This document shows positions 2 to 17,216 of a stretch of DNA of 17,590 bases, one piece after another (position 1 is the stretch's first letter; each line of letters begins with the position of its first letter). The notes under the pieces are model-generated. The model saw only the letters and a list, made by a program, of their open reading frames with translations. It searched no databases and was not told the origin of the DNA. A program made the position numbers and the translations under genes. The stretch comes from Bugula neritina (taxonomy: Eukaryota; Animalia; Bryozoa). The stretch is taken from the NCBI GenBank assembly GCA_964035545.1, contig CAXIUT010000268.1, positions 1-17,590 of the forward strand. The letters run 5' to 3'.

Positions 2-2209
2 GTATTGAACAGCGAAAAATTTAGTGACCCAAAAGATCTTGTTGCGTGCGTTATTCGAGGAAAGGACTCTTTTTATGGCGCAATTTTAGAAGAATACTTT
101 CGCCGCCATCCACAGGTAATGTGGCCGAGCAACCTGCAAGTGAGTGATATCAAATGGCTTTCACTTTGGCCGATTCTGAGGAACTATGGTTGGAACTATA
201 TGAAAAATTCTTCTCTTACCGGCCCATTCTATGCTCGAGAGGGTGTGACGAAAGAGGAAGCTAAGGATCCTCTAAATCTAGGATCTCGCTGTTTTAGTAC
301 TTCGAGAGAAGCTACAGAGTACATTCTTAGCCACCAGCAAGACTACAACGCAGTCTTATCCGAGTACTTTGAAAGACATCCACTGCCAGAACGTGATGAC
401 GATGAAAGCGAAAATAATGAAGAAAGTACGGAGCCGTACAACATCACCAGGAAACGAGCATCTGCTGCCCCCCAGTCTAAGTATCTATTAGAGGCCCCAC
501 AATTTGATGAAAATATTAAAAATAAAGTCATTGAAGTAATGTGGCCATTATTGGAGCGCGAGCAAAAATATTGGTGCATTAAAGGTAGCAGAACATCACC
601 GTGGACGTTCTTTCGTCCTGGAATTCACAACACTCGAGATGGTAAAGAAAACATTGACTACTTTGTTGGTGAAGAGGCACTATGGAAACACGTCCGTGAA
701 AACCATCCTGCTATATTCCAGGAAGTTTTTACGGCTAGTGAATCGACTCTAACCAAATCTTTTCAGTCGACAGGAAACAGGCGAGGCCCAAATTGCGCCG
801 TTGTGGATTCAAAATACCTTGGCGAAAATGCTCTTCCTGAGATTCCAAAGCAGGAAACACGCAAGGCGCTTGATTTCCTTTGGCCAATGGTTAAGAAAGA
901 AATGAAGCGTGACCGCTCGTCACATCGAAGCTCTTTAAAGCATGATTTTCTTCAAGCAGGCCTAAATGACACTGACGAACAAGATAAATCGGTAGACGAA
1001 GCTGCGTTTCTTGCTCATATACGGGATCGATATCCTCATTTGGTGAAAAGATACCTTTGCCATGCACGAGGAGAACAGGGTTTTGACTCAGGGAGACTGG
1101 CACGAAAGCGCCCAATTCGTAACAGTATCGGTTTTAGAAGCGATCGAAAGAGTTCTCCCATTTCAGGCAATGAAAATGTCGCTATTACGGCAGAGGAAGG
1201 AAGACGAGATAATACAAAACTGCAGCAACGCTCATACCACGAGAATCGTAGACGAAAGCGTCATTCTGAACCTATCGGGATAGGCATGGATTTGGAGCAT
1301 ACTGAGGAGAAAATTGATTCATTGAATTACTCCAAAGATAAGTGCGTATATTTCAATGATGTTTGGCCTATTCTGCAAGACCAGGGCTGGAAATTTTTTC
1401 CTGGATCTGGATTGGCGTCATTTTACTATGCGAAACCACATGTTCTACGTAAATCAGATGGACAACTTGGAATTGACATGTTCGACACGGAGGATGGCGT
1501 CGTAAAAGAGTATTTAAAATACATGGAAGAGTGTGAAAAGCAATCTGATCGAAGTACTTCAAGTGAAAGAAGCTCCAATAGCCAAGATGACGATGATGAG
1601 CTGGCAGACGAACTGGGGCGTTTTGCTATTGAAATTCTACAAACAGAGAGTAACTGGCTGCACAAACGTGGTACGCGTTTATTTCCTGACTATTTTTTGA
1701 AGCCTCCGGCAACAGAAAAGTGCGTGGCTGTTGAAGGCTCGACTCTTTTCACAGGATTTGAAGCTTTGGGAAAGCATGTAAAAGCCAACTATCCGGATAT
1801 TGTTGACCGATTTAATCATTCCACAAGAAATCACAGCGGCGAACTAGTCGAAAAGAGACTTAGCGCTCAAAAAAGTAGTTTGACTATTGAAAATTCGTCC
1901 AAGCGACGCTCATCTTCAAAGAAATCTGTGGACGGCTCGCCTAATAAGAAGTTTAAATCGTCAAAGAAGGCCAACGATTCGCAACTTTTATCCCCTCCAA
2001 TGTCGCCGCAGTCAGGTGATCGCTCATGGAGAAGGGACAGCTCAACTGTTAACAATAAGGCTTTGTTTGACTTTATATGGGCGAAATTGCAGCAGGACGG
2101 TTGGGAAACTGCTTTCATTCGACGTTCGAAGGACGGAATTACGAAGCAACTATTGTTTGGGGGGAAGAAGCTCTTGTTCAGTATGTATGTAAGGAGCGCT
2201 CAAGCTTGA
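2..2209 (+). CDS. 5'-truncated protein with tandem W-x-x-L-x(3)-GW...[YF]..P...G...F modules separated by low-complexity basic/acidic linkers; probably nuclear, function unknown
   Basis: The frame is open from the window edge (>734 codons). Modules start at about nt 164 (LWPILRNYGW...FSTSREATEYI), 539 (MWPLLE...YFVGEEALWKHV), 878 (degenerate LWPMV...EAAFLAHI), 1361 (VWPILQDQGW...MFDTEDGVV), 1628 (IEILQTESNW...LFTGFEALGKHV) and 2075 (IWAKLQQDGW). The first 36 aa (FSDPKDLV...ILEEYFRRHP) match the tail of module 1 (FSTSREAT...VLSEYFERHP), so the gene begins upstream of the window. Basic NLS-like runs are present (RRRKRH, KRRSSSKK, KKFKSSKK). The 3' end may be spliced (GTATGT at 2181/2185). Confidence 0.85.
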   Translation, partial: VLNSEKFSDPKDLVACVIRGKDSFYGAILEEYFRRHPQVMWPSNLQVSDIKWLSLWPILRNYGWNYMKNSSLTGPFYAREGVTKEEAKDPLNLGSRCFSTSREATEYILSHQQDYNAVLSEYFERHPLPERDDDESENNEESTEPYNITRKRASAAPQSKYLLEAPQFDENIKNKVIEVMWPLLEREQKYWCIKGSRTSPWTFFRPGIHNTRDGKENIDYFVGEEALWKHVRENHPAIFQEVFTASESTLTKSFQSTGNRRGPNCAVVDSKYLGENALPEIPKQETRKALDFLWPMVKKEMKRDRSSHRSSLKHDFLQAGLNDTDEQDKSVDEAAFLAHIRDRYPHLVKRYLCHARGEQGFDSGRLARKRPIRNSIGFRSDRKSSPISGNENVAITAEEGRRDNTKLQQRSYHENRRRKRHSEPIGIGMDLEHTEEKIDSLNYSKDKCVYFNDVWPILQDQGWKFFPGSGLASFYYAKPHVLRKSDGQLGIDMFDTEDGVVKEYLKYMEECEKQSDRSTSSERSSNSQDDDDELADELGRFAIEILQTESNWLHKRGTRLFPDYFLKPPATEKCVAVEGSTLFTGFEALGKHVKANYPDIVDRFNHSTRNHSGELVEKRLSAQKSSLTIENSSKRRSSSKKSVDGSPNKKFKSSKKANDSQLLSPPMSPQSGDRSWRRDSSTVNNKALFDFIWAKLQQDGWETAFIRRSKDGITKQLLFGGKKLLFSMYVRSAQA

Positions 2210-2412: not shown

Positions 2413-2928
2413 CTAACCAAACGACGATTTACTTGACTTTAGCATGTGGAACTCTTCTTTTCGAGTCATCAATGTTTTTTCTAGTTCTTCCGGAAGACGA
2501 GGGTAAAGCATCAGTTGGGGGGGGTGGCAACCAATAACAATCTAGTACGAGGGATTTTCTTGACTTTTTATGTAAAAGTTCGTATTCTTGGTAGTTTTTT
2601 CCTTTGCTGGGAATCCAAAAAGAATTGAAGCAACAGCATTTCTGTTTGAGTAGCCAGATATGTTGCCTTAAACAATGGGAATGTAATTCTTTGCGGATGA
2701 TTTCCTTGAAAGCTGATGCAAGCATTGACATTAGTTTGCTTGGAATATTCCGATTAGCCTTAGAGGTTGCAATTGGTTTCATCCAATTATTTTTGTTCTT
2801 CTTCAGATTGGAATGTTTTGAAAGAACCAAAAACCTTTTCTTGTTTCGTCTATTTCATCTTTCCGTCTTGTTGGTTGGAATCTAATAAAATCATCTCCAT
2901 TCATCGCTTTTTTAAGGTTCCTGCCCAT
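2413..2928 (-). pseudogene. Scrambled coding-like relic, possibly a decayed tyrosine-recombinase fragment
   Basis: Protein-like segments alternate among the three minus-strand frames with stops and frameshifts: MGRNLKK...GFWFFQN, ...MLASAFKEIIRKELHSHCLR..., ...LMLYPRLPEELEKTLMTRKEEFHML*. An H-x-L-R motif lies at 2666-2677. The family assignment rests on motif resemblance only. Confidence 0.25.
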
Positions 2929-3131
2929 CTATCTCTCTTTCTATCTATCTATCTCTCACTCATTTTCTCTTTCTCTCTCTCTTCCTGTCTCTCTTTCTCT
3001 CTCTTTATCTCTCTCTCCCTGTCTCTCTTGATCTCTCACTCCCTGTCTCTCTTTATCTCTCTCTCCCTGTCTTTCTTGATCTCTCCCTATCTCTCTCTCA
3101 TTTTCTCTATCTTTACCTCTCTCCCTCTCCT
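2929..3131. repeat. Polypyrimidine (CT-rich) tract containing a 24-bp tandem unit
   Basis: About 200 bp, overwhelmingly C/T on the + strand. Near-identical copies of ATCTCTCTCTCCCTGTCTCTCTTG lie at 3007-3030, 3031-3054 and 3055-3078. Confidence 0.9.
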
Positions 3132-3147: not shown

Positions 3148-3935
3148 TGTCTCTGCGGTGATTGTGATCTTCCTCTGTTCTGCTGCTTGGAGTATCTCGA
3201 CTTGGTTGCTGCTGTGTCTCTGCCTTGGTTGATTGGGATCTGCCTTTGCTTGGAGCTGGACTATCCCGCCTTGGTTGTTGCTCTGCTTGAAGTATCTCGA
3301 CTTGCTTGTTGCTCTGCTTGAAGTATCTCGACTTGGTTGCTGCTGTCTCTGCGTTGGTTGATTGGGATCTTCCTCGACTTGAAGTATCTTGCCTTGGTTG
3401 CTGCTCTGCTCGAAGTATCTCGGCTTGGTTGCTGCTCTGCTTGAAGTATCTCGCCTTAGTTGCTGCTCTGCTCGAAGTATCTCGGCTTGGTTGCTGCTCT
3501 GTTTAGAAGTATCTCGACTTATTTGCTGCTGTCTCTGCCTTGGTTGATTGGGATCTGCCTTTGCTTGGAGCTGGACTATCTCGGCTTGGTTGCTGCTCTG
3601 CTTGAAGTATCTCGCCTTAGTTGCTGCCCTGCTTGAAGTATCTCGACTTGGTTGCTGCTCGGCTTAGAAGTATCTTGCCTTGGTTGCGGCTTATGCTCGA
3701 AGTATCTCGCCTTGGTTACTGCTTTGCTTGGAGTATCTCGGCTTGGTTGCTGCCCTGCTTAAAGTATCTTAACTTGGTTGCTGCTCTGCTTAGAAGTATC
3801 TTGACTTGGTTGCGGCTTATGCTTGAGGTATCTCGCCTTGGTTACTGCTTTGCTTGGAGTATCTCGCCTTAGTTGCTGCCCTGCTTAAAGTATCTTAACT
3901 TGTTTGCTGTTTATCTGCTTGGTTGCTGTTCTGCT
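3148..3935. repeat. 31-32 bp minisatellite (consensus GAAGTATCTCGNCTTGGTTGCTGCTCTGCTT), 20 units, with an interspersed second block and a 126-bp higher-order repeat
   Basis: GTATC/CTATC anchors at 3192, 3261, 3292, 3323, 3384, 3415, 3446, 3477, 3509, 3576, 3607, 3638, 3670, 3702, 3733, 3764, 3796, 3828, 3859 and 3890. A second block, GTCTCTGCCTTGGTTGATTGGGATCT, follows the units at 3192, 3323 and 3509, with a degenerate copy at ~3149. Confidence 0.95.
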
Positions 3936-3967: not shown

Positions 3968-5107
3968 ATGTTAAATAGAATGGTTACAATGATGGTGTCG
4001 AAGAATCCTTTGCTTTCAAGTAAGACTCTTGCTCATGCTGTATCAGGTGCTTTAGGTAGTGTAATAGCGATGGCTTTGACGTATCCTTTAGAACGTGTAA
4101 GAACAATTAAGCAACTTGATGAAGGTGATGGAATTGGACAAAGTAATAGTGATATGGAAGTGCTTCGAATGATTATTAAACGGCAAGGATTTTCTGGGTT
4201 GTTTGATGGGCTTTCCCCAATGTTGATTGCTCTTGGAGTTTCAAATCTGGTGTATTTTTATTGGTTTACCGCTTTGAAAACTCTTTATGGAATCAGTGTT
4301 CGAATTAGAAATAAAAGGCTGAAAGATTCCGCTTATCGTCATCAAAATGCAGGCCCATTAGCTAGTCTCATTCTCGCCAGCATTGCTGCTGCTGTTAATG
4401 TGCTGCTAACGACACCCATTTGGCGTGCTTATACCCGTTTTGCGGTTGCACGTCTTGAAATGTTGAAAAAGACGGCCTGCGACTCCGGAGATAATTTGAC
4501 TTCAACAACATCTCGACAAGCTAGGTATTCTGGGATTGCCGATTGCATGTATAAATTGTACAGTGAAGAAGGTCTGGCGTCGCTGTGGAAAGGGTTAGGA
4601 CCTTCACTTATCCTATGCAGTAACCCATCCATTCAATTTTCATCCTATGAATGGTTGAAGACTGTCGCTGTTGGTTGGCGCAATAGAGGGGAACTAGATT
4701 CAGGAAATGAAAACTTCGTACATAGTGTATCGTTTGATGCCACTGATAATATTAGTGTCGAAAGAAGCATAGATGATGAACTTCATGCTTACGAGTATTT
4801 ACTTCTTGGAGGAGGCAGCAAGCTGGTAGCGACGCTAGTAACTTATCCGCTACAAGTTGCACAAACTAGACTGCGAGCCGTCTCAGGTAAAAACCGGGAT
4901 GGGGAGAGCCAGAGCTTGACGACTATTTCCTGTTTATCGGATATATTTAGAAAAGAAGGGCTAGCTGGTTGGTATCGCGGTATCCAGGCGAAACTTCTTC
5001 AGACCTGCTTGACCTCTGCATTCATGTTCACATTTTACGAAAGGATATTCGGCATGGTTGCCCGGGTAACTCTTCAAAAATCCAGCTATCTACACTCAAA
5101 ACGCTAA
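3968..5107 (+). CDS. SLC25A17: Mitochondrial carrier family (SLC25) protein, peroxisomal PMP34/SLC25A17/PXN-like nucleotide/cofactor carrier
   Basis: Three carrier repeats: TYPLERVRT, NVLLTTPIWRAYTR and ATLVTYPLQVAQTR, plus EGLASLWKGLGPSLILCSNPSIQFSSYEWLK and EGLAGWYRG. The Trp in the second signature and the NPxIQF motif are typical of the peroxisomal subfamily. Alternative nearby ATGs exist at 3980, 3989 and 3992. Confidence 0.85.
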   Translation: MLNRMVTMMVSKNPLLSSKTLAHAVSGALGSVIAMALTYPLERVRTIKQLDEGDGIGQSNSDMEVLRMIIKRQGFSGLFDGLSPMLIALGVSNLVYFYWFTALKTLYGISVRIRNKRLKDSAYRHQNAGPLASLILASIAAAVNVLLTTPIWRAYTRFAVARLEMLKKTACDSGDNLTSTTSRQARYSGIADCMYKLYSEEGLASLWKGLGPSLILCSNPSIQFSSYEWLKTVAVGWRNRGELDSGNENFVHSVSFDATDNISVERSIDDELHAYEYLLLGGGSKLVATLVTYPLQVAQTRLRAVSGKNRDGESQSLTTISCLSDIFRKEGLAGWYRGIQAKLLQTCLTSAFMFTFYERIFGMVARVTLQKSSYLHSKR

Positions 5108-5364
5108 ATCAAGGTACATAAATCTCCACATTCTCGGTGAAAAAATACTTGACGAAAAGGAAACAAGCGTTTTGGGGCTAGAGCCCGTGACAAAAATGCC
5201 TAACAGTGTTGGTGCATCGAATCGCAACAGCATTGCATCCGTACACGTCACTACCTGCACAGTCTACAAAAAATGCCGACTTCGAACTGCATTATCGAAA
5301 TCATCGTCAGGAAACCTAGACACCATTCGTAGCATACTATGATACTGCGGTTTCCTTAAAATGC

Positions 5365-6765
5365 TTAGTATACGCGAATTGGTCTGTTCAATCTCTGGAG
5401 TAAAAGCAGACGATCCGCACATCGGATGACGCGTTGCAATGCCATTAACTTTATATAAGTCTTCAATAATTCTCTGCAGGATAAATTCTCACCCAACTTT
5501 TCTGCAAATTTTCTTCTGGAATCCACCTTAGCTAAGCTCTCAACCAAAGCTGATAATTTAGAATCGTGCTCAAACTTCGTATAGGTCACGTACATTTTCA
5601 ACACCAGAGAACCAGAAGCCATCGAGACAAGGTCACTAACATGCTCTTTCAAGAGGCCAAAAATCACACTTGCCGTTCTTAAACGATCACTTGGAGATTG
5701 GGCAAGAAGAACACCTGTTCGCTGCGCGCTCATTCTTTCGCGAATTTCCACGCGCAAATAGTCTTGGACAGCGTTAAAGTCAAATTCTTGAGGGGTCGCT
5801 CCACCAATTTTGTTCGATTCGTTTTTTTCTGTTCTATCATATTCACCATTTTGCGGTCGGATATCCCAATGAGTACCTTCACCAAGCAATATCCGCCAGA
5901 CTTGGTCACTGTCCTGTGAGGTTTCTTCCTGACACGTACTCTCACCTTTTAGCAAATGAATCGCCTTTCCGAGATAATCCACATGACTATTCAAGCGCTT
6001 TTCGTAAAGAAGCTTTCGCATACGGTTTATCTTAGAAAAAACCTTGTTTCGCATAGAAGCAGGTATGTCCTTTATTGGAATCCCGGGATCCGATAAAACA
6101 TCAAAATAAGTTTCATTATCTGCCACTAAATTTCCCGAATCGCCCTCTAGTCGATGTGAAAAAGAAGTATCCCCTCGCATGGCGTTGCCATATTGCTTCC
6201 CAGGATATCCCCATGGGTCAATTGTGTTCCAATCTGACCATTCATTAGGGGTTGGTTGAGGCGGGTGCAATGTCAAATCTTCGTGGGGCTCATTGTCTGA
6301 TCCCAGATCGGCAACATTTTCCCTAATTCCCAAATCCGAATCAGACAAAGTCTCAACAGTATCTAAATCATTGGATCTAGAGCGGGAAAGCGACGCAATT
6401 CTTTCTCGTCTACGCTTAGCTACTGAGTCACGCATCATTTCACACTTCGACGATATTTTGTCAGTTTGGTTCGTGGCAATATTAAACATCTGAGTCTCAG
6501 CTCCACCCCATTCCTCCCACGAGTTTGAGATTGGCTGCGACGGATGATAGTTGACGCCAAACCATGCTGGTGGAGGTTCCAAACGAGGATCACCAGCAAG
6601 AACCGTGATAGCAGGATCATATCCATAGAAACAATATCGATGGCGCCGACGCTTCCGATATGTGAAATTTCTTTTAGTGTTCAAACGCTGTGCATTTTTC
6701 TGAGAATCAGAGCCAGCTCCGGAATCCGCATCCAAGAGCTCTTGATCCTTCTCTTGGATCCGCAT
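5365..6765 (-). CDS. Hypothetical protein, 466 aa, with an NLS-like basic stretch, disordered N-terminal half and probably helical C-terminal region
   Basis: Long uninterrupted ORF with an in-frame stop two codons upstream of the ATG. Basic runs RKRRRHR and KRRRER. No domain recognised. Confidence 0.75.
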   Translation of the reverse strand: MRIQEKDQELLDADSGAGSDSQKNAQRLNTKRNFTYRKRRRHRYCFYGYDPAITVLAGDPRLEPPPAWFGVNYHPSQPISNSWEEWGGAETQMFNIATNQTDKISSKCEMMRDSVAKRRRERIASLSRSRSNDLDTVETLSDSDLGIRENVADLGSDNEPHEDLTLHPPQPTPNEWSDWNTIDPWGYPGKQYGNAMRGDTSFSHRLEGDSGNLVADNETYFDVLSDPGIPIKDIPASMRNKVFSKINRMRKLLYEKRLNSHVDYLGKAIHLLKGESTCQEETSQDSDQVWRILLGEGTHWDIRPQNGEYDRTEKNESNKIGGATPQEFDFNAVQDYLRVEIRERMSAQRTGVLLAQSPSDRLRTASVIFGLLKEHVSDLVSMASGSLVLKMYVTYTKFEHDSKLSALVESLAKVDSRRKFAEKLGENLSCRELLKTYIKLMALQRVIRCADRLLLLQRLNRPIRVY

Positions 6766-8330: not shown

Positions 8331-8474
8331 TTTAAAGCCTTTCAAACTAATACATCGCTTATTGCTAGTGACAATTACACCCTTGAACACTCTTTCAAAT
8401 ATCCTGATCTGTCTCTTTCTTCTCTCTAACTTCGTAACGCGATAACTTCTCTCAAATCAAGAAATGTGGTATAT

Positions 8475-8504
8475 AACCTAACCTAACCTAACCTAACCTA
8501 ACCT
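8475..8504. repeat. (AACCT)6, i.e. a (TTAGG)n telomere-type pentamer tract at an interstitial site
   Basis: Six perfect AACCT units are visible directly in the sequence. Confidence 0.9.
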
Positions 8505-9507: not shown

Positions 9508-10488
9508 GTTGGGACGCTTGATTCTTACTCATCATATTCTTTTACATTGAACTTGTCAATCTTGCTTAGTTGCTTAGCAATGAAGGACATGGGATCGACT
9601 ATTATTGACGAAATATTTTCCTTATCGGTATTACCAGCTTTCGAAAACGAATTGAATTTTACTGCACAAAAATTTCACGACCAACTTTTTGTCTCCTGGA
9701 AGCGTTTATCTGTTTGAAATGATTAGCTATTCAACGCACGAAACTATTATCCCGGGTATATTCAAGACTGAAATCATCTATTTTCTCATAAAGCAGTCTC
9801 TCTCTCCAACAAGAAGATTGAATCAAGATCTAGCAAGTGGCCACGATTCTGAGAAACCTTTATGAATAATTCCAATGTTGAACCCTTCGTTAGGTTAGTT
9901 CTCGGCGGGACAGAAACGATTGTCATTTATTGGTTTTGCAACGTGGCTGAAAAATGGATCATTCCTTTTTTCCGCTACAAAATCCACCAGGCTTTATTTT
10001 AAAAGAATGTGAATCATCTCAGCTTCCCCCGCGGAGCCTCAGGTATTGTCAAAGCGAAGAATAGACGGTAAAAGGTCGTCATTAAAAATCGTGAGTTCCA
10101 GAGTAAAGCTTATAGTTGACACGATTTAAGCCTCTATATCACTCTCAGAAACTATCAAAAGAATGAATCCGACAGTAAACTGGTATATCTGCTAGTTTAG
10201 ACCATCAAAGTCGACCAGATCCCGAAATTGGGTTGATATAAACTTGATCCCGAACGGTCATGACCCAACACTGACTCATTTTCAGGCCAAAAAATCTTAA
10301 TTTTTAAAGTAGATTCGGCTGTTCTGACAATTGCATTGATTTCTTCAGAGTATATTATTTCTACTTACATAATCAAAAAAGCACAAGAAGAATTCAAAAG
10401 ACTTGAAAAGATTTCGAAAAGATGCCGGGAGCTCAGGTACACACCAGGTGTGTTCTCTTCACTTTGTCTCCATGGATCCCTGACCTCG

Positions 10489-12396
10489 ATGAAAGCGCCA
10501 AACGAGTCAACTGTATTGATAATTGTGTACTGTAGGCAGGAATACTCCTGTGCACTTCCTTCTCGACGATCAAATCTTCAGAGGACATTTCAAGATGCCT
10601 GTCTTCATTTTGGGATCTCGACCATGGAGATGGACCGTTTGGGCTTCTGGTATGGCGACCAGTTCGTTGATCCATTGGCTCCACTTTGCTCCTCCAGGGT
10701 CCCTTCAAATGCTGTGTTGGAATTGAAGCCTCGGCAAGACGGAGCGATGAAACAGACGGAAGAATTGGACACCTCAGCGAAGAATCGTACGGAGCTGGCG
10801 GAGGAGCTCCAAGTGGATCTTGAGATTGGGAATTCATCCAAGGAGGTGATGAAGGTGTTGCCATCAGTGTCGATTTTGCAGATTTTAAGAATGCTGGGGT
10901 TTACCGAGGAGCGCATTGTGTCTGAAATTGAATCCGTTTTTGTGGCTGGACAAACCGTGACTGGTATGGATTCCTTCGCTAACACGACTCTGCTTACCTT
11001 TGGGATTCGAGATGGAGCAACTTCTTTCAAGATTATTCGGAAGGGAATAAGATCTTCGGGTTCGATTGTAGCTGATGGCAAAGGAATCGAGTACGATTTC
11101 GATCGTGAATCGAGAAGACGTAAAATTGGAGCTAGTGGTGTTCAGAGTGACGCGAAAGACCGCGAGAAAGTTGAAACTAGCCAGGAGAAGTCTTTCGACA
11201 AGCTATTTCTTGCGCTGCTTGGTAAAGGTGCTGATGAGCACATCGAAGGCACTATTTCTACACTCAAGGCAATACTGTACAACCTTATTTCAGAGCCGAA
11301 TGAAGAACGATTTAGACGACTACGAACTTCGAATAAGCGATTCTCCGAAACTTTTGGCCGGATTCCTGCTGCCTTAGACCTGCTGCGCGCTGCAGGTTTC
11401 GCATTAGAGGACGCATCTAGCGATTCTTGCCCGGTTTATGTACTTGAAAAGTCGCGTGAAGACTCTGGGTTATTGTATTCTATGCTAGTATCATTGGAAA
11501 AGTTTCAAAAATTTACGCCAGTTGGTAAGCCAAGCTGTGTAGGTATCGGAATTTCACAACCAGCGAGTCTGCCGATCCCCGCAACCGAGAGCCACCAAAA
11601 CTTCGACCCTTTTCGCTCCGATGTGGTGCGTTTCGCGAATTTCCCACGGAATAACCTGCAGTCTTGTGCCGAGTCTGAGCTTGAATCTTTAAAAGCAAAG
11701 CGAGATTCGATCATTGCTTCGAGCGGGATTCCCGAAAGAAACATTCGCATGTGGCTGCAAGGCTCAACAAATCCAGACCTAGCGCATATCCCAGATGAAA
11801 TTATTTCTGACGCTTCATCTTCTGTAACCGAGTCCTCTGTGGACTCTAGAATATTAAGCGTTGCCGCCAAGACTCGTCTGGAAAAGCAAAAGGAGTCAGA
11901 AAAGTTTAAGACTAGGGTTATCCGTGAATTAGAAACAATTAAGAAGTCGAAAGTGTACAAACAGACTGTTATCAGGGTGCGATTTCCGGACATGTTTGCT
12001 CTTGAAGCTTGCTTTTCTCCAAATGAATGTATTTCTGATGTAGTTGCCTGCATAGAAGGTGTTCTGGTTCCCGAATTGAAGTCTTCTTTCTTTCTGCGTT
12101 CACCTCATGCACCAAAGAGACTTGAAACAGATGTTAAGTTGTCAAATGCCGGATTGGTTCCGACTGCTGTAATATTTTTGTCCTGGATATCGTCCGTAAA
12201 TGAGGCGCCTGGGTTTCAGACTTATTTGCGGGCAGAAGAGCAGCGAAAAATGTCGAGTTCACTCTGTAGAAAGCCCCATGCTATTCCAGCAGGAATTGAT
12301 ATTGTAGATTCTAGTGATGCTCGAATTCGCCAAGATGCAAATTCTGCGTCAGCGCCAAGGCAAAGAAAAAAATTGCCAAAGTGGTTGAAACTCTAG
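10489..12396 (+). CDS. p97/Cdc48 cofactor with TUG-type UBL1, a probable second UBL, PUB and UBX domains (ASPSCR1/PUX1/UBXN6-related), ~635 aa
   Basis: The first in-frame ATG is at 10489; the track ORF starts on an upstream TTG. The N-terminal LQRTFQDACLHFGI...VPSNAVLEL resembles TUG UBL1. ISTLKAILYNLISEPNEERFRRLRTSNKRF...ALDLLRAAGF is a PUB domain. KTRVIRE...KVYKQTVIRVRFPDMFALEACFSPNE...LSNAGLVPTAVI is an ASPL/PUX1-type UBX. The C-terminal KLPKWLKL matches ASPL/PUX1. Confidence 0.85.
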   Translation: MKAPNESTVLIIVYCRQEYSCALPSRRSNLQRTFQDACLHFGISTMEMDRLGFWYGDQFVDPLAPLCSSRVPSNAVLELKPRQDGAMKQTEELDTSAKNRTELAEELQVDLEIGNSSKEVMKVLPSVSILQILRMLGFTEERIVSEIESVFVAGQTVTGMDSFANTTLLTFGIRDGATSFKIIRKGIRSSGSIVADGKGIEYDFDRESRRRKIGASGVQSDAKDREKVETSQEKSFDKLFLALLGKGADEHIEGTISTLKAILYNLISEPNEERFRRLRTSNKRFSETFGRIPAALDLLRAAGFALEDASSDSCPVYVLEKSREDSGLLYSMLVSLEKFQKFTPVGKPSCVGIGISQPASLPIPATESHQNFDPFRSDVVRFANFPRNNLQSCAESELESLKAKRDSIIASSGIPERNIRMWLQGSTNPDLAHIPDEIISDASSSVTESSVDSRILSVAAKTRLEKQKESEKFKTRVIRELETIKKSKVYKQTVIRVRFPDMFALEACFSPNECISDVVACIEGVLVPELKSSFFLRSPHAPKRLETDVKLSNAGLVPTAVIFLSWISSVNEAPGFQTYLRAEEQRKMSSSLCRKPHAIPAGIDIVDSSDARIRQDANSASAPRQRKKLPKWLKL

Positions 12397-12487
12397 CTTT
12401 AAGCTGATATTTTGCACAACTGTAAACGGTTTAGACAAGCGCATTGCACTTGCGAAGCCCCAATTGATTTTTTTTCGATGCAAGCTA

Positions 12488-15232
12488 TCATTGACCAAAC
12501 GGATGATCTGACTCAAATAGTTGGTTTGCTCTCAAGGCCTCTCTTCCATATTCTTCTTCTATAGTATCCCTGTTCATTTTTTGTGCCGATTTCACCATTG
12601 CATCCATAACCTTATCCAACTCTTGTCGATGGAGTCGACATAATAAATCAAGCTGAGAGCTGCTCAGCTCTGATAAATTCCAACCCAAAACATGCCTTGG
12701 ATCTAAAGCCAGAGAAATGGAACTTGGGTACTCTCTTATCATCATGTTAGAAGCAGCGTCTTCAAAAGCTTCTACGCGGTCAATCGGAGGAGTGAGTGCG
12801 TCTTGTCTTTTTGGAAAGTAGACAGGATCTACAATTTCAGGAACCTCCTTAGGAGACTCCCAAACCTCGGAGGAATCTCCATTCAACGTTTCCATTTCAA
12901 TGCCACAATCACTTGAGCTTAGTATTCGATTTGAGCGAAAAAGCTCAAAACATCTTTCAAACTTACTTTCAGTCGGGATAGACAATGAAGAAGTCGATTG
13001 ATAAATTTTGCTTTTCAAAGGTTTCTCATCTTCGCAAGAAAAATCCGATACGCCCTGTTTTTTAACCTCCGTTTCAAAAGCCAAAGATTTCGAAGAACAT
13101 GAATTTGGTCCTTCCTTTTCTATGGATTGTGCCCGTTTGTTATCGACAATGTATCGATCTTCAACAACACATTTTTCGGGCAATTCCGCACCCTCGTTCA
13201 AGAAAGATGCCGGAGCCTTACTTTTAGATTCATGGGAATGGATCGCTTTAGTTTCACTGCCTTGAAATATTTCATCCGTTCTCACTTCGGCGAACTCTTC
13301 TTTCTTTTCATTTACGTCTGCAGACCATGCATCTTCTTCGAGTACTTTATTTAAAATGGTGTTTGGATCTTCTGGCGAAGATTTAGGAGGACATTTGTTT
13401 TCCTTCATTGTGTTTCCATCGGTCTCACTAGGTTCTACTGACTCGTTCTGCGGATCCACGCCCAGAAGAACAGCTTGATTTTTCTTTTTCTTCTTTTTCT
13501 TCTTCTCTTTTTTTGTCTTCTTCTTCACTGCCCGGTCGTCTGATTTACATGAGCTTCGCGGGCTACCACTGCTAAGCAATACATCCAAATTTCTCTCAGC
13601 TGCCTTCTTCGCCGCAAACCATGCCTTAAGTAAAATCTGCGCGGCTAGATCCTTGTTTGTGCGACGATTGGATGGCCTCTTTCGAAGGGCACAATCCACA
13701 GCAGTATCACCTGATGAATTTTTCATTGTGATATCGGATCCTAACTCCAAAAGAGCAGCAATACACTGGGGACGGCAGTGTCTAGAAGCCCAATGCAACA
13801 ACGTGTCCTCAAATTCAACCTTGAGCGGCTTTCGAAAAATCTTTTGGAGATGGGAGGAAGAGCGCTCTCCAAATCGAAAATTAAGCAAAACTGGCAGATT
13901 CTCTTTGGGTATGTACTTACATAAAACCCGTAGTGCGTTAGCACGGAGCTGATCTTCATCTGCATCCTGGTACACATCGATTTCTGATTCCCAGCATACA
14001 ATAATCAGCAAAACTCCATAAAAAAATACGTTTGGATTGCGGATTTTTCCGCACAGCGTAACGCATGGTTCGTCATCTGTATTTTTTTTCTGGCCTTCTT
14101 CACGGATGCGCCATGCACCGGTGTCGAATGATAAAACTATAGAATCCATTACTGCCCGAATAGAGGCAGGCTTGAGGAAAACAATAGCGAGCATGAACGG
14201 AGAAATGGAATGAACACCAAAAGGATCTACTCCAATTTCACGAATAAGATAGCTGATAACCTTCTCAGAGCCACGGAAACAAGCCAGGTGCAAAGCGGTT
14301 ACACCCTCAACGGTTCCAGCATCTGGTGGAACGTCGCACTCTTCTATCAGGTATTTAACAATATCCACATGGCCAGCTTCAGCCGCAGTATGTAAGGGCA
14401 GTACGTTTCGATGCGAATTGTCGCCGCTAAAACTAGTTGTGCGATTAACATTAGCGTGCGCTTCCTCAACTAGTACCCGAAGGCAATCCAGATGACCATA
14501 TCTGCAAGTGAAGTGTATTGGTGTCATTCCATTCTCTTGTACGCATTCCAGATCCCCACTAAGGGTAAGCGAATAAGTCGAAGAGTCAGAAATTCCCAGA
14601 GAAGCCCTTACCAAGGAGGCATTCCCAATCGTGCAAGCTATTCTGAGCGATGCATCTAGCAATCTTTGGAACACTATTATTACACCCTGACTGCTCGTAT
14701 TCCCCTGGCACATATCCCGTAGCACCTGTGCTACATCATCAATCCGTTCGAGGTCGTCAGATAACCCTGCACTCTCTATATAATCCTGCCAAGCATAGTC
14801 GAGCTCTTTAAGCGGCAACTCGTTGAGCATCAATTCGCAGCCATCCTCTTCGTCAATTTCTTCCAGCTTCTTCAGAAGCCGTTCCCCAAAGTCAAGGCCA
14901 TAATCTACTTCCTCCCGAGACCCATCATCACCCTCGAGTCCTCGATACGGATCGGGGGCTTTTGGCACGAAGGCTTCCAAGGACATGCCGTAATGTTCTT
15001 GGAGTTCAAATTCCCCAGAGTCTTTTCTTATCATCCAGTTATGCTCACCGTAAAAGTGCCCTCCGCTCACGCCGGTCTCCGCGCCCTCGATTTCTAATTT
15101 CAGACGAACATCTGCAGCCCGAGCACGGACCGATTCCCATGCCAATTTGGGAACACGTCGAACTTCAAACCTGTTAGCTCCTTTCCTGAGTAATTCAATT
15201 TCGCTGCAATCGTTGTCGATATCATATGCCAT
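12488..15232 (-). CDS. Ankyrin-repeat protein, 914 aa, with a poly-Lys tract, disordered acidic middle and helical C-terminal module
   Basis: ANK motifs GMTPIHFTCRYGHLDCLRVLV, LPLHTAAEAGHVDIVKYLI, GVTALHLACFRGSEKVISYLI, DTLLHWASRHCRPQCIAALLELGSD and GDTAVDCA. KKKTKKEKKKKKKKKN tract. The exact start codon is uncertain (15232 versus 15034 or 14986). Confidence 0.9.
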   Translation of the reverse strand: MAYDIDNDCSEIELLRKGANRFEVRRVPKLAWESVRARAADVRLKLEIEGAETGVSGGHFYGEHNWMIRKDSGEFELQEHYGMSLEAFVPKAPDPYRGLEGDDGSREEVDYGLDFGERLLKKLEEIDEEDGCELMLNELPLKELDYAWQDYIESAGLSDDLERIDDVAQVLRDMCQGNTSSQGVIIVFQRLLDASLRIACTIGNASLVRASLGISDSSTYSLTLSGDLECVQENGMTPIHFTCRYGHLDCLRVLVEEAHANVNRTTSFSGDNSHRNVLPLHTAAEAGHVDIVKYLIEECDVPPDAGTVEGVTALHLACFRGSEKVISYLIREIGVDPFGVHSISPFMLAIVFLKPASIRAVMDSIVLSFDTGAWRIREEGQKKNTDDEPCVTLCGKIRNPNVFFYGVLLIIVCWESEIDVYQDADEDQLRANALRVLCKYIPKENLPVLLNFRFGERSSSHLQKIFRKPLKVEFEDTLLHWASRHCRPQCIAALLELGSDITMKNSSGDTAVDCALRKRPSNRRTNKDLAAQILLKAWFAAKKAAERNLDVLLSSGSPRSSCKSDDRAVKKKTKKEKKKKKKKKNQAVLLGVDPQNESVEPSETDGNTMKENKCPPKSSPEDPNTILNKVLEEDAWSADVNEKKEEFAEVRTDEIFQGSETKAIHSHESKSKAPASFLNEGAELPEKCVVEDRYIVDNKRAQSIEKEGPNSCSSKSLAFETEVKKQGVSDFSCEDEKPLKSKIYQSTSSLSIPTESKFERCFELFRSNRILSSSDCGIEMETLNGDSSEVWESPKEVPEIVDPVYFPKRQDALTPPIDRVEAFEDAASNMMIREYPSSISLALDPRHVLGWNLSELSSSQLDLLCRLHRQELDKVMDAMVKSAQKMNRDTIEEEYGREALRANQLFESDHPFGQ

Positions 15233-15773
15233 GGTCAGAAAGAAAATTCGTTACTTGGTGATTCGCATGAGAAAGGATGATGAGTGGCCGGCTGGTGGCT
15301 CGACTGACATGGGAGATGCAGCTGGAAAGAAACGCCGTTTCCCGCGTTCGATTGGGTATTCGGAATCTAATAAGCGGTTTGGAAATATTAGGTATGCGTT
15401 AAAGCCTTTGTCGTGGTTGAAAGGCTTGGGCGCTAGTGACATTATTCGCAAGTTGACGAAATTGGCGTTTTGTGAATTTGATGATGCTAAAGGGATATTG
15501 ATGGGGAACTTGTGTCAGGTAGTTGCTTTAGATCATCGGCTTGGAATGCTGGTGCTGCGGGTTGATCGTCAGTATGCGAAGGAGTGGTGTAAAATCGTTC
15601 GCAGAGTTGGAAGTTTTGAGGATTCCGGTTCTCTGTCTTGCAATATCTTGCATATTTCTGGCTCCGATTCGCAATTGAGAAGAGCTTTGAAAAGGTTTCC
15701 TGCCAAGTATCCGCAATGGGCGGGTGAGTTTCCTTCGAACGAATGGTCTGTTTTGATTAATGATCTTGGTTGA
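15231..15773 (+). CDS. POP5: RNase P/MRP subunit, POP5/Rpp14 family (~180 aa, divergent)
   Basis: The N-terminus MVRKKIRYLV matches the POP5 MVRxKxRYL signature. GMLVLRVDR and CNILHISGS match the family's G..ILR..R and .LHVSGT motifs. An insertion of about 50 aa follows strand 1. Confidence 0.7.
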   Translation: MVRKKIRYLVIRMRKDDEWPAGGSTDMGDAAGKKRRFPRSIGYSESNKRFGNIRYALKPLSWLKGLGASDIIRKLTKLAFCEFDDAKGILMGNLCQVVALDHRLGMLVLRVDRQYAKEWCKIVRRVGSFEDSGSLSCNILHISGSDSQLRRALKRFPAKYPQWAGEFPSNEWSVLINDLG

Positions 15774-17153: not shown

Positions 17154-17216
17154 GTAAATTGGGTTTGTTTGTCGTTTGGGTAGCGAGGCTCTGATACATA
17201 ATTATTGATTGAATAG
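17154..17216 (+). other. 63-nt GT-AG spliceosomal intron in MGMT
   Basis: GTAAAT...TTGAATAG. Removing it joins AG+T to give ...LKT-S-PRAVGNAL and removes the in-frame stops. Confidence 0.9.

Follow-up and report, generated by a model that had tools for sequence, protein, structure and literature searches.

How close can the start codons of two divergent genes come before nothing is left between them? The question is raised by a locus in the Bugula neritina assembly GCA_964035545.1, on contig CAXIUT010000268.1 (C277). The window analysed here is this whole contig of 17.6 kb, part of a 216-Mb assembly whose main genome is that of an animal. On it, a POP5-like open reading frame (ORF) on the plus strand (15231-15773) and a 914-residue ORF with ankyrin repeats on the minus strand (12488-15232) lie head to head, both intact, and overlap by 2 bp at their 5′ ends. 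Direct reading places both first ATGs inside a single palindromic CCATGG at 15229-15234: the plus-strand ATG occupies 15231-15233 and the minus-strand ATG 15232-15230, so that bases 15231 and 15232 are common to both. On balance we lean towards a true start-codon overlap of this pair, with mRNAs that would be antisense to each other at their 5′ ends. To our knowledge, such overlaps between divergent eukaryotic genes are rare.

Two first ATGs in one palindrome

The locus was singled out by an earlier, sequence-only reading, and all of its coordinates hold. The minus-strand ankyrin frame is closed by a TAA at 15253-15251, seven codons 5′ of its first ATG. Downstream, in-frame methionines follow next at residue 67 (15034, in the context TGGATGA) and residue 83 (14986), and the translation contains no ATG between 15232 and Met67. 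The same reading had also argued from strong Kozak contexts at both starts, GCCATGG for the POP5-like gene and ACCATGG for the ankyrin ORF. This argument has to be discounted. With TGAATGT, GAGATGC and AAGATGT at the remaining credible starts of the contig, a preference for RCCATGG is unsupported for its organism.

How much of the arrangement comes for free? A C before any start codon automatically creates an ATG on the opposite strand, and we agree with the caveat already attached to the sequence-only reading that a palindromic CCATGG supplies the second context along with the first. The motif itself is unremarkable, with five occurrences in the window against 2.9 ± 1.5 expected, and is not enriched. 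Since the palindrome hands over the opposite-strand ATG, what has to be explained is why this ATG shares the frame of the ankyrin ORF (a chance of 1 in 3) and why 66-73 codons are free of stops.

On the POP5 side the start is well anchored, as judged from the N-terminal motif of the family. The ORF encodes 180 residues, begins with MVRKKIRYL and ends with a TGA at 15771-15773. The motif of the POP5 type, MVRxKxRY(L/I), is present and starts at residue 1, and there is no in-frame ATG further 5′ in the open frame. When MVRKKIRYLV is set against MVRKKNRYLL from exon 1 of the host animal's POP5, eight of the ten residues are identical, each sequence being counted from its residue 1; the proposal that the family signature fixes this start is borne out. 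Pfam PF01900 matches residues 83-152 of the ORF (profile positions 34-102) at 22.3 bits, against a cut-off of 23, with an E-value of 1.4e-4. The match lies in the C-terminal two thirds of the protein and is split by a loop of ~40 residues. The ORF probably encodes an RNase P/MRP subunit of the Rpp14/Pop5 family. A phmmer search with the protein found no POP5 among chains of the Protein Data Bank (PDB). As to the alpha-beta sandwich fold of Pop5/Rpp14, the single-sequence AlphaFold model of the protein is of low confidence (pLDDT 52, pTM 0.49), and Foldseek with this model returned no PDB match at E ≤ 0.001. Searches for relatives, including metagenome contigs, found none.

The host animal has a POP5 of its own on a chromosome-scale contig (C2:23256744-23257785), which is AT-rich and comprises two exons separated by an intron of ~720 bp. 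PF01900 consequently matches the assembly twice.

Could the junction itself be misleading? Misassembly, or a rearrangement in the recent past, might have joined two 5′ ends on a low-coverage passenger contig, in which case one partner would be non-working and left without a promoter. That the window is a stray contig of 17.6 kb from a non-target organism, and that the assembly holds no second copy against which the join could be cross-checked, would fit this scenario. Both ORFs are intact and coding-like by their scores, however, and the junction shows no inverted repeat, direct repeat, foldback symmetry or other mark of a breakpoint. We consider an artefact or a non-working partner the least probable of the explanations weighed here.

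The orphan N-terminus of the ankyrin ORF

With the POP5-like start anchored, the case turns on the other side of the palindrome. The 914-residue ORF, which ends in TGA, certainly carries ankyrin repeats by its Pfam matches: Ank_2, Ank and Ank_4 score 94.8, 91 and 81.6 bits, with E-values of 1e-23 to 1e-27, far above the cut-offs. The repeats lie at residues ~198-330 and again near residues 480-520. They are preceded by an orphan N-terminal region of ~200 residues and followed by a lysine-rich linker and an orphan C-terminal region. At its other end the ankyrin gene converges with a plus-strand PUB-UBX gene, with 91 bp between the two stop codons (12396-12488), and the 3′ untranslated regions (UTRs) of the two genes probably overlap.

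Do the codons between the first ATG and Met67 belong to a protein? The stretch in question consists of 66 codons at 15035-15232 on the minus strand, and it was scored with two coding models. The first is a codon-usage model built from seven credible genes of the contig, with stop codons excluded and each gene scored by a model from the other six. Codons 1-66 reach 0.112 bits per codon, which corresponds to the 58th percentile of coding windows (mean 0.091, standard deviation 0.083). Stop-free windows of 66 codons taken from a wrong frame or from non-genic DNA average about -0.10, and 0.8-2% of them attain 0.112; the Gaussian likelihood ratio of coding to non-coding is ~11. The second model, a 3-periodic second-order Markov chain compared with a non-genic one, assigns the stretch 11.7 bits, with a coding median of 9.8. 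Of the non-genic stop-free windows, 2.5% score as high, and the likelihood ratio is ~13. Both halves of the stretch score positive, G occupies 45% of first codon positions, and the ankyrin frame is the best of the six, the other five together holding 14 stops. The GC fraction of 0.505 is high compared with coding and non-genic windows alike and does not discriminate. Taken together, codons 1-66 look like coding DNA in both codon usage and periodicity.

This result bears most directly on an ordinary short bidirectional promoter. Here the ankyrin protein would start at Met67 or Met83, the open frame up to the CATG of the POP5-like start would be a product of chance, and the 198-246 bp to the POP5 ATG would accommodate a pair of core promoters, back to back, each with a short 5′ UTR. 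Several observations speak for it. The second ATG comes with the palindrome, about 2-8% of non-genic windows stay open over 66-73 codons, and a syntenic relative discussed below has a divergent gap of ~270-290 bp, which makes short shared promoters plausible in the group. Residues 1-88 also score below residues 89-176 (0.05-0.19 against 0.25-0.40 bits per codon; 0.145 for the whole frame), and the N-terminus had no homologues in the searches. Against it stand the two coding models, with a likelihood ratio of ~11-13. A short promoter would require the mirror ATG to fall in frame (1 in 3), 66 or more codons to be open (~0.04) and their score to be coding-like (~0.02), which puts the joint probability of the data at the order of 1e-3 or less. 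Met67 moreover has T at -3 and A at +4. Finally, since the first ATG is in frame and followed by open codons, translation of an ankyrin mRNA with its 5′ end above 15232 would begin at this ATG in any case. We regard the short bidirectional promoter as a serious alternative that is less probable than the overlap. Openness of the frame alone is not decisive, as a genome contains thousands of divergent pairs and a few such cases would arise by chance.

A second way to move the ankyrin start is splicing. The contig has at least one short spliceosomal intron, a verified GT..AG intron of 63 nt (17154-17216) with an in-frame stop inside it, in an MGMT-like gene (PF01035; 16948-17391, plus strand). 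The organism thus has such introns, and gene models built from ORFs only can mislead. At the ankyrin 5′ end a candidate donor and acceptor are present and delimit a speculative, in-frame GT..AG intron of 51 nt (15254-15204, minus strand), which is drawn from the sequence only; alternatively, a first exon might lie further upstream. Removal of the 51 nt would eliminate both the TAA and the first ATG and shift the start to 15268-15266, so that the coding overlap would grow to ~38 bp, becoming deeper rather than being abolished. Residues 1-22 are the lowest-scoring N-terminal window of the ORF, as this model would lead one to expect. On the other hand, the candidate is so far a sequence coincidence, an in-frame fit here would be shared by every intron with a length divisible by three, the candidate's pyrimidine tract lies at the 5′ rather than the 3′ end, and other large ORFs of the contig appear intronless. 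More generally, the long ORFs here are mostly without introns, which are few and not zero. A spliced ankyrin 5′ end is in our view improbable.

A third candidate was a variant genetic code with TAA and TAG as sense codons, which would reopen the frame at the TAA of 15253. It was rejected, as the long ORFs of the contig use all three standard stops and are free of in-frame TAA and TAG.

Searches for relatives of the N-terminus covered several sources. A word-indexed search with residues 1-230 gave no match. An exhaustive HMMER search with residues 1-210 against 1.84 billion representatives gave a single match, to a bacterial protein, with an E-value of 9e-4. This hit was dismissed as chance: the protein consists of ~15 near-identical DUF5818-like repeats, and the score sums repeated matches of 13-15 out of 36 positions. 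Pfam DUF5818 itself does not match the N-terminal query. No relatives were found in metagenome contigs, a metagenome scan with the neighbouring PUB-UBX protein, aimed at syntenic contigs, had no match, and a search of the ESM Atlas gave weak ankyrin-like leads only. The assembly contains no paralogue or allele of either protein, and exact-protein look-ups in public assemblies, transcript contigs included, recorded nothing.

What would a true overlap entail? If ankyrin translation begins at the ATG at 15232, the intergenic DNA between the two genes would be reduced to zero. Each transcription start site (TSS), together with at least a core promoter, would then fall within the opening codons of the partner gene, and the two mRNAs would be mutually antisense across their 5′ ends. 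The claim of the sequence-only reading that no intergenic DNA is left if both ATGs are used is upheld as far as it leans on the anchored POP5 start, and it gains from the coding-like score of codons 1-66 under two models; its appeal to Kozak contexts falls away. Nearly leaderless or trans-spliced mRNAs, mutually exclusive transcription and duplex masking of both start codons, which it also raised, would be hypothetical extensions.

Two further ATGs, both read from the sequence, constrain the leaders. On the minus strand, an ATG at 15268-15266 mirrors POP5 Met13 within a second CATG and opens an in-frame mini-ORF of five codons (ATG and four sense codons) that ends at the TAA of 15253-15251 and spans 15251-15268. 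For the ankyrin mRNA this implies a leader of <36 nt or reinitiation. On the plus strand, an ATG 5 nt before that of the POP5-like gene is out of frame and in a weak context. It opens an ORF of 12 codons, stop included (15226-15261), that overlaps the POP5 start, which implies either leaky scanning or a leader of less than ~5 nt. Convergent initiation within a few tens of bases would follow, and the two genes might interfere with each other's transcription or be coupled as a possible consequence of an overlap. A much bolder version can be formulated: with no intergenic DNA, embedded core promoters and near-leaderless antisense 5′ ends, expression of the two genes might be mutually exclusive or tightly coupled. 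The pair would then serve as a functional switch based on convergent initiation, in a stramenopile, free-living or commensal, with an otherwise uncompacted genome. This we hold to be unlikely.

Several points weigh against the overlap that we favour. The searches found no homologue, paralogue or allele of either the POP5-like or the ankyrin protein, and the single-sequence structure model of the ankyrin N-terminus is uninformative (pLDDT 37). The coding models were trained on only ~3,300 codons, all from one contig. Across the thousands of divergent pairs in a genome, chance should produce between a few and a dozen open extensions onto a neighbour's CATG, and this locus was picked precisely for an ORF reaching its neighbour's start. 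Other genes of the contig have 0.7-1.9 kb of upstream DNA without coding signal, so that a pair lacking promoter DNA would be a local outlier, and the syntenic relative has its ordinary divergent gap of ~270-290 bp adjoining the carrier gene.

A contig from a third organism

Whose genes are these? The ORFs of the contig end in TAA, TAG and TGA. Its GC content of 43% compares with 25-33% in 18 of 20 other small contigs sampled from the assembly, the remaining two having 24.6% and 51.8%; these 20 contigs are ciliate-like or otherwise unlike the one considered here. A PMP34-like carrier gene (3968-5107) is closest to labyrinthulomycete proteins, with 45% identity to Hondaea and 42% to Aplanochytrium. 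Its best match, at 54%, lies on contig JACKZZ010003462.1 of assembly GCA_014466275.1. Positions 9980-13273 of that contig are syntenic with 3968-6765 of the window and comprise the carrier and the next, convergent gene, at 54% and 50% identity. The relative's contig ends before the expected position of the ankyrin and POP5-like genes. Standard stops, GC content and carrier relatives together point to a third organism, neither the host animal nor a ciliate, and on these features the source of the contig is a labyrinthulomycete-like stramenopile with the standard code. No telomeres are present on the contig.

The remainder of the window holds some features worth recording. Directly 5′ of the carrier gene (ATG at 3968), 1.7 kb are filled by a block of tandem repeats and CT-rich microsatellite. 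The tandem repeat has a 31-nt unit, present ~20 times, and shows higher-order periods of 95 and 126; the coordinates 3262-3909 and 2927-3129 cover repeat and microsatellite. A perfect (TAACC)6 at 8474-8504, the complement of TTAGG telomere-type repeats, is located ~190 bp 5′ of the ATG of an ATG27-like gene (8695) and could be either an interstitial telomere-like tract or a promoter element. At the left end, an ORF of 734 residues (5-2209, plus strand) runs off the contig. It contains several modules of the W..L...GW type and has a weak match to DUF7650 (20 bits); the assembly has no paralogue of it.

Comparison with known gene arrangements

The head-to-head overlap is in itself a known kind of arrangement, and we regard the present case as a single-locus curiosity. 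In either interpretation it concerns one locus, and its wider significance is modest. In open-access text we found no literature on divergent eukaryotic genes with overlapping start codons, and none on labyrinthulomycete 5′ ends.

Head-to-head (5′-5′) overlapping protein-coding genes are known in eukaryotes, for example human INO80E/HIRIP3 (PMC11890862), and have been surveyed (PMC2335118, PMC1487180); animals and plants provide well-documented cases both of such overlaps and of bidirectional promoters (PMC11890862, PMC2335118, PMC1487180, PMC2648788). With these pairs our locus would share mutually antisense mRNA 5′ ends and sense/antisense interference as a possible regulatory consequence. 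In the animal cases described, however, it is usually the 5′ UTRs or first exons that overlap while the starts are far apart, whereas here the start codons would share two bases and no dedicated promoter DNA would be left. If true, it would offer a natural test case for convergent initiation by RNA polymerase II over tens of bases, as well as for scanning ribosomes on very short leaders.

Bidirectional promoters serve divergent pairs with TSSs less than 1 kb apart (PMC2648788, PMC2077898). The divergent orientation, the very short spacing and a likely shared regulation are common to such pairs and to our locus. Unlike them, it would have no intergenic segment between the start sites if both ATGs are used. 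If instead Met67 or Met83 is the true start, the locus would be a bidirectional promoter of about 200-250 bp. It would then hold a practical lesson: starts preceded by C plant an opposite ATG and can mislead gene models that take the longest ORF.

A third comparison is offered by genomes that have run out of room. In microsporidia and nucleomorphs intergenic DNA has been lost, and transcripts start inside neighbouring genes. These genomes are highly compacted; the contig considered here, with its long non-coding stretches upstream of other genes, is not. Should both ATGs be used, the pair would represent an extreme head-to-head overlap, with each promoter working from within the coding sequence of the partner gene, in a genome with room to spare elsewhere.

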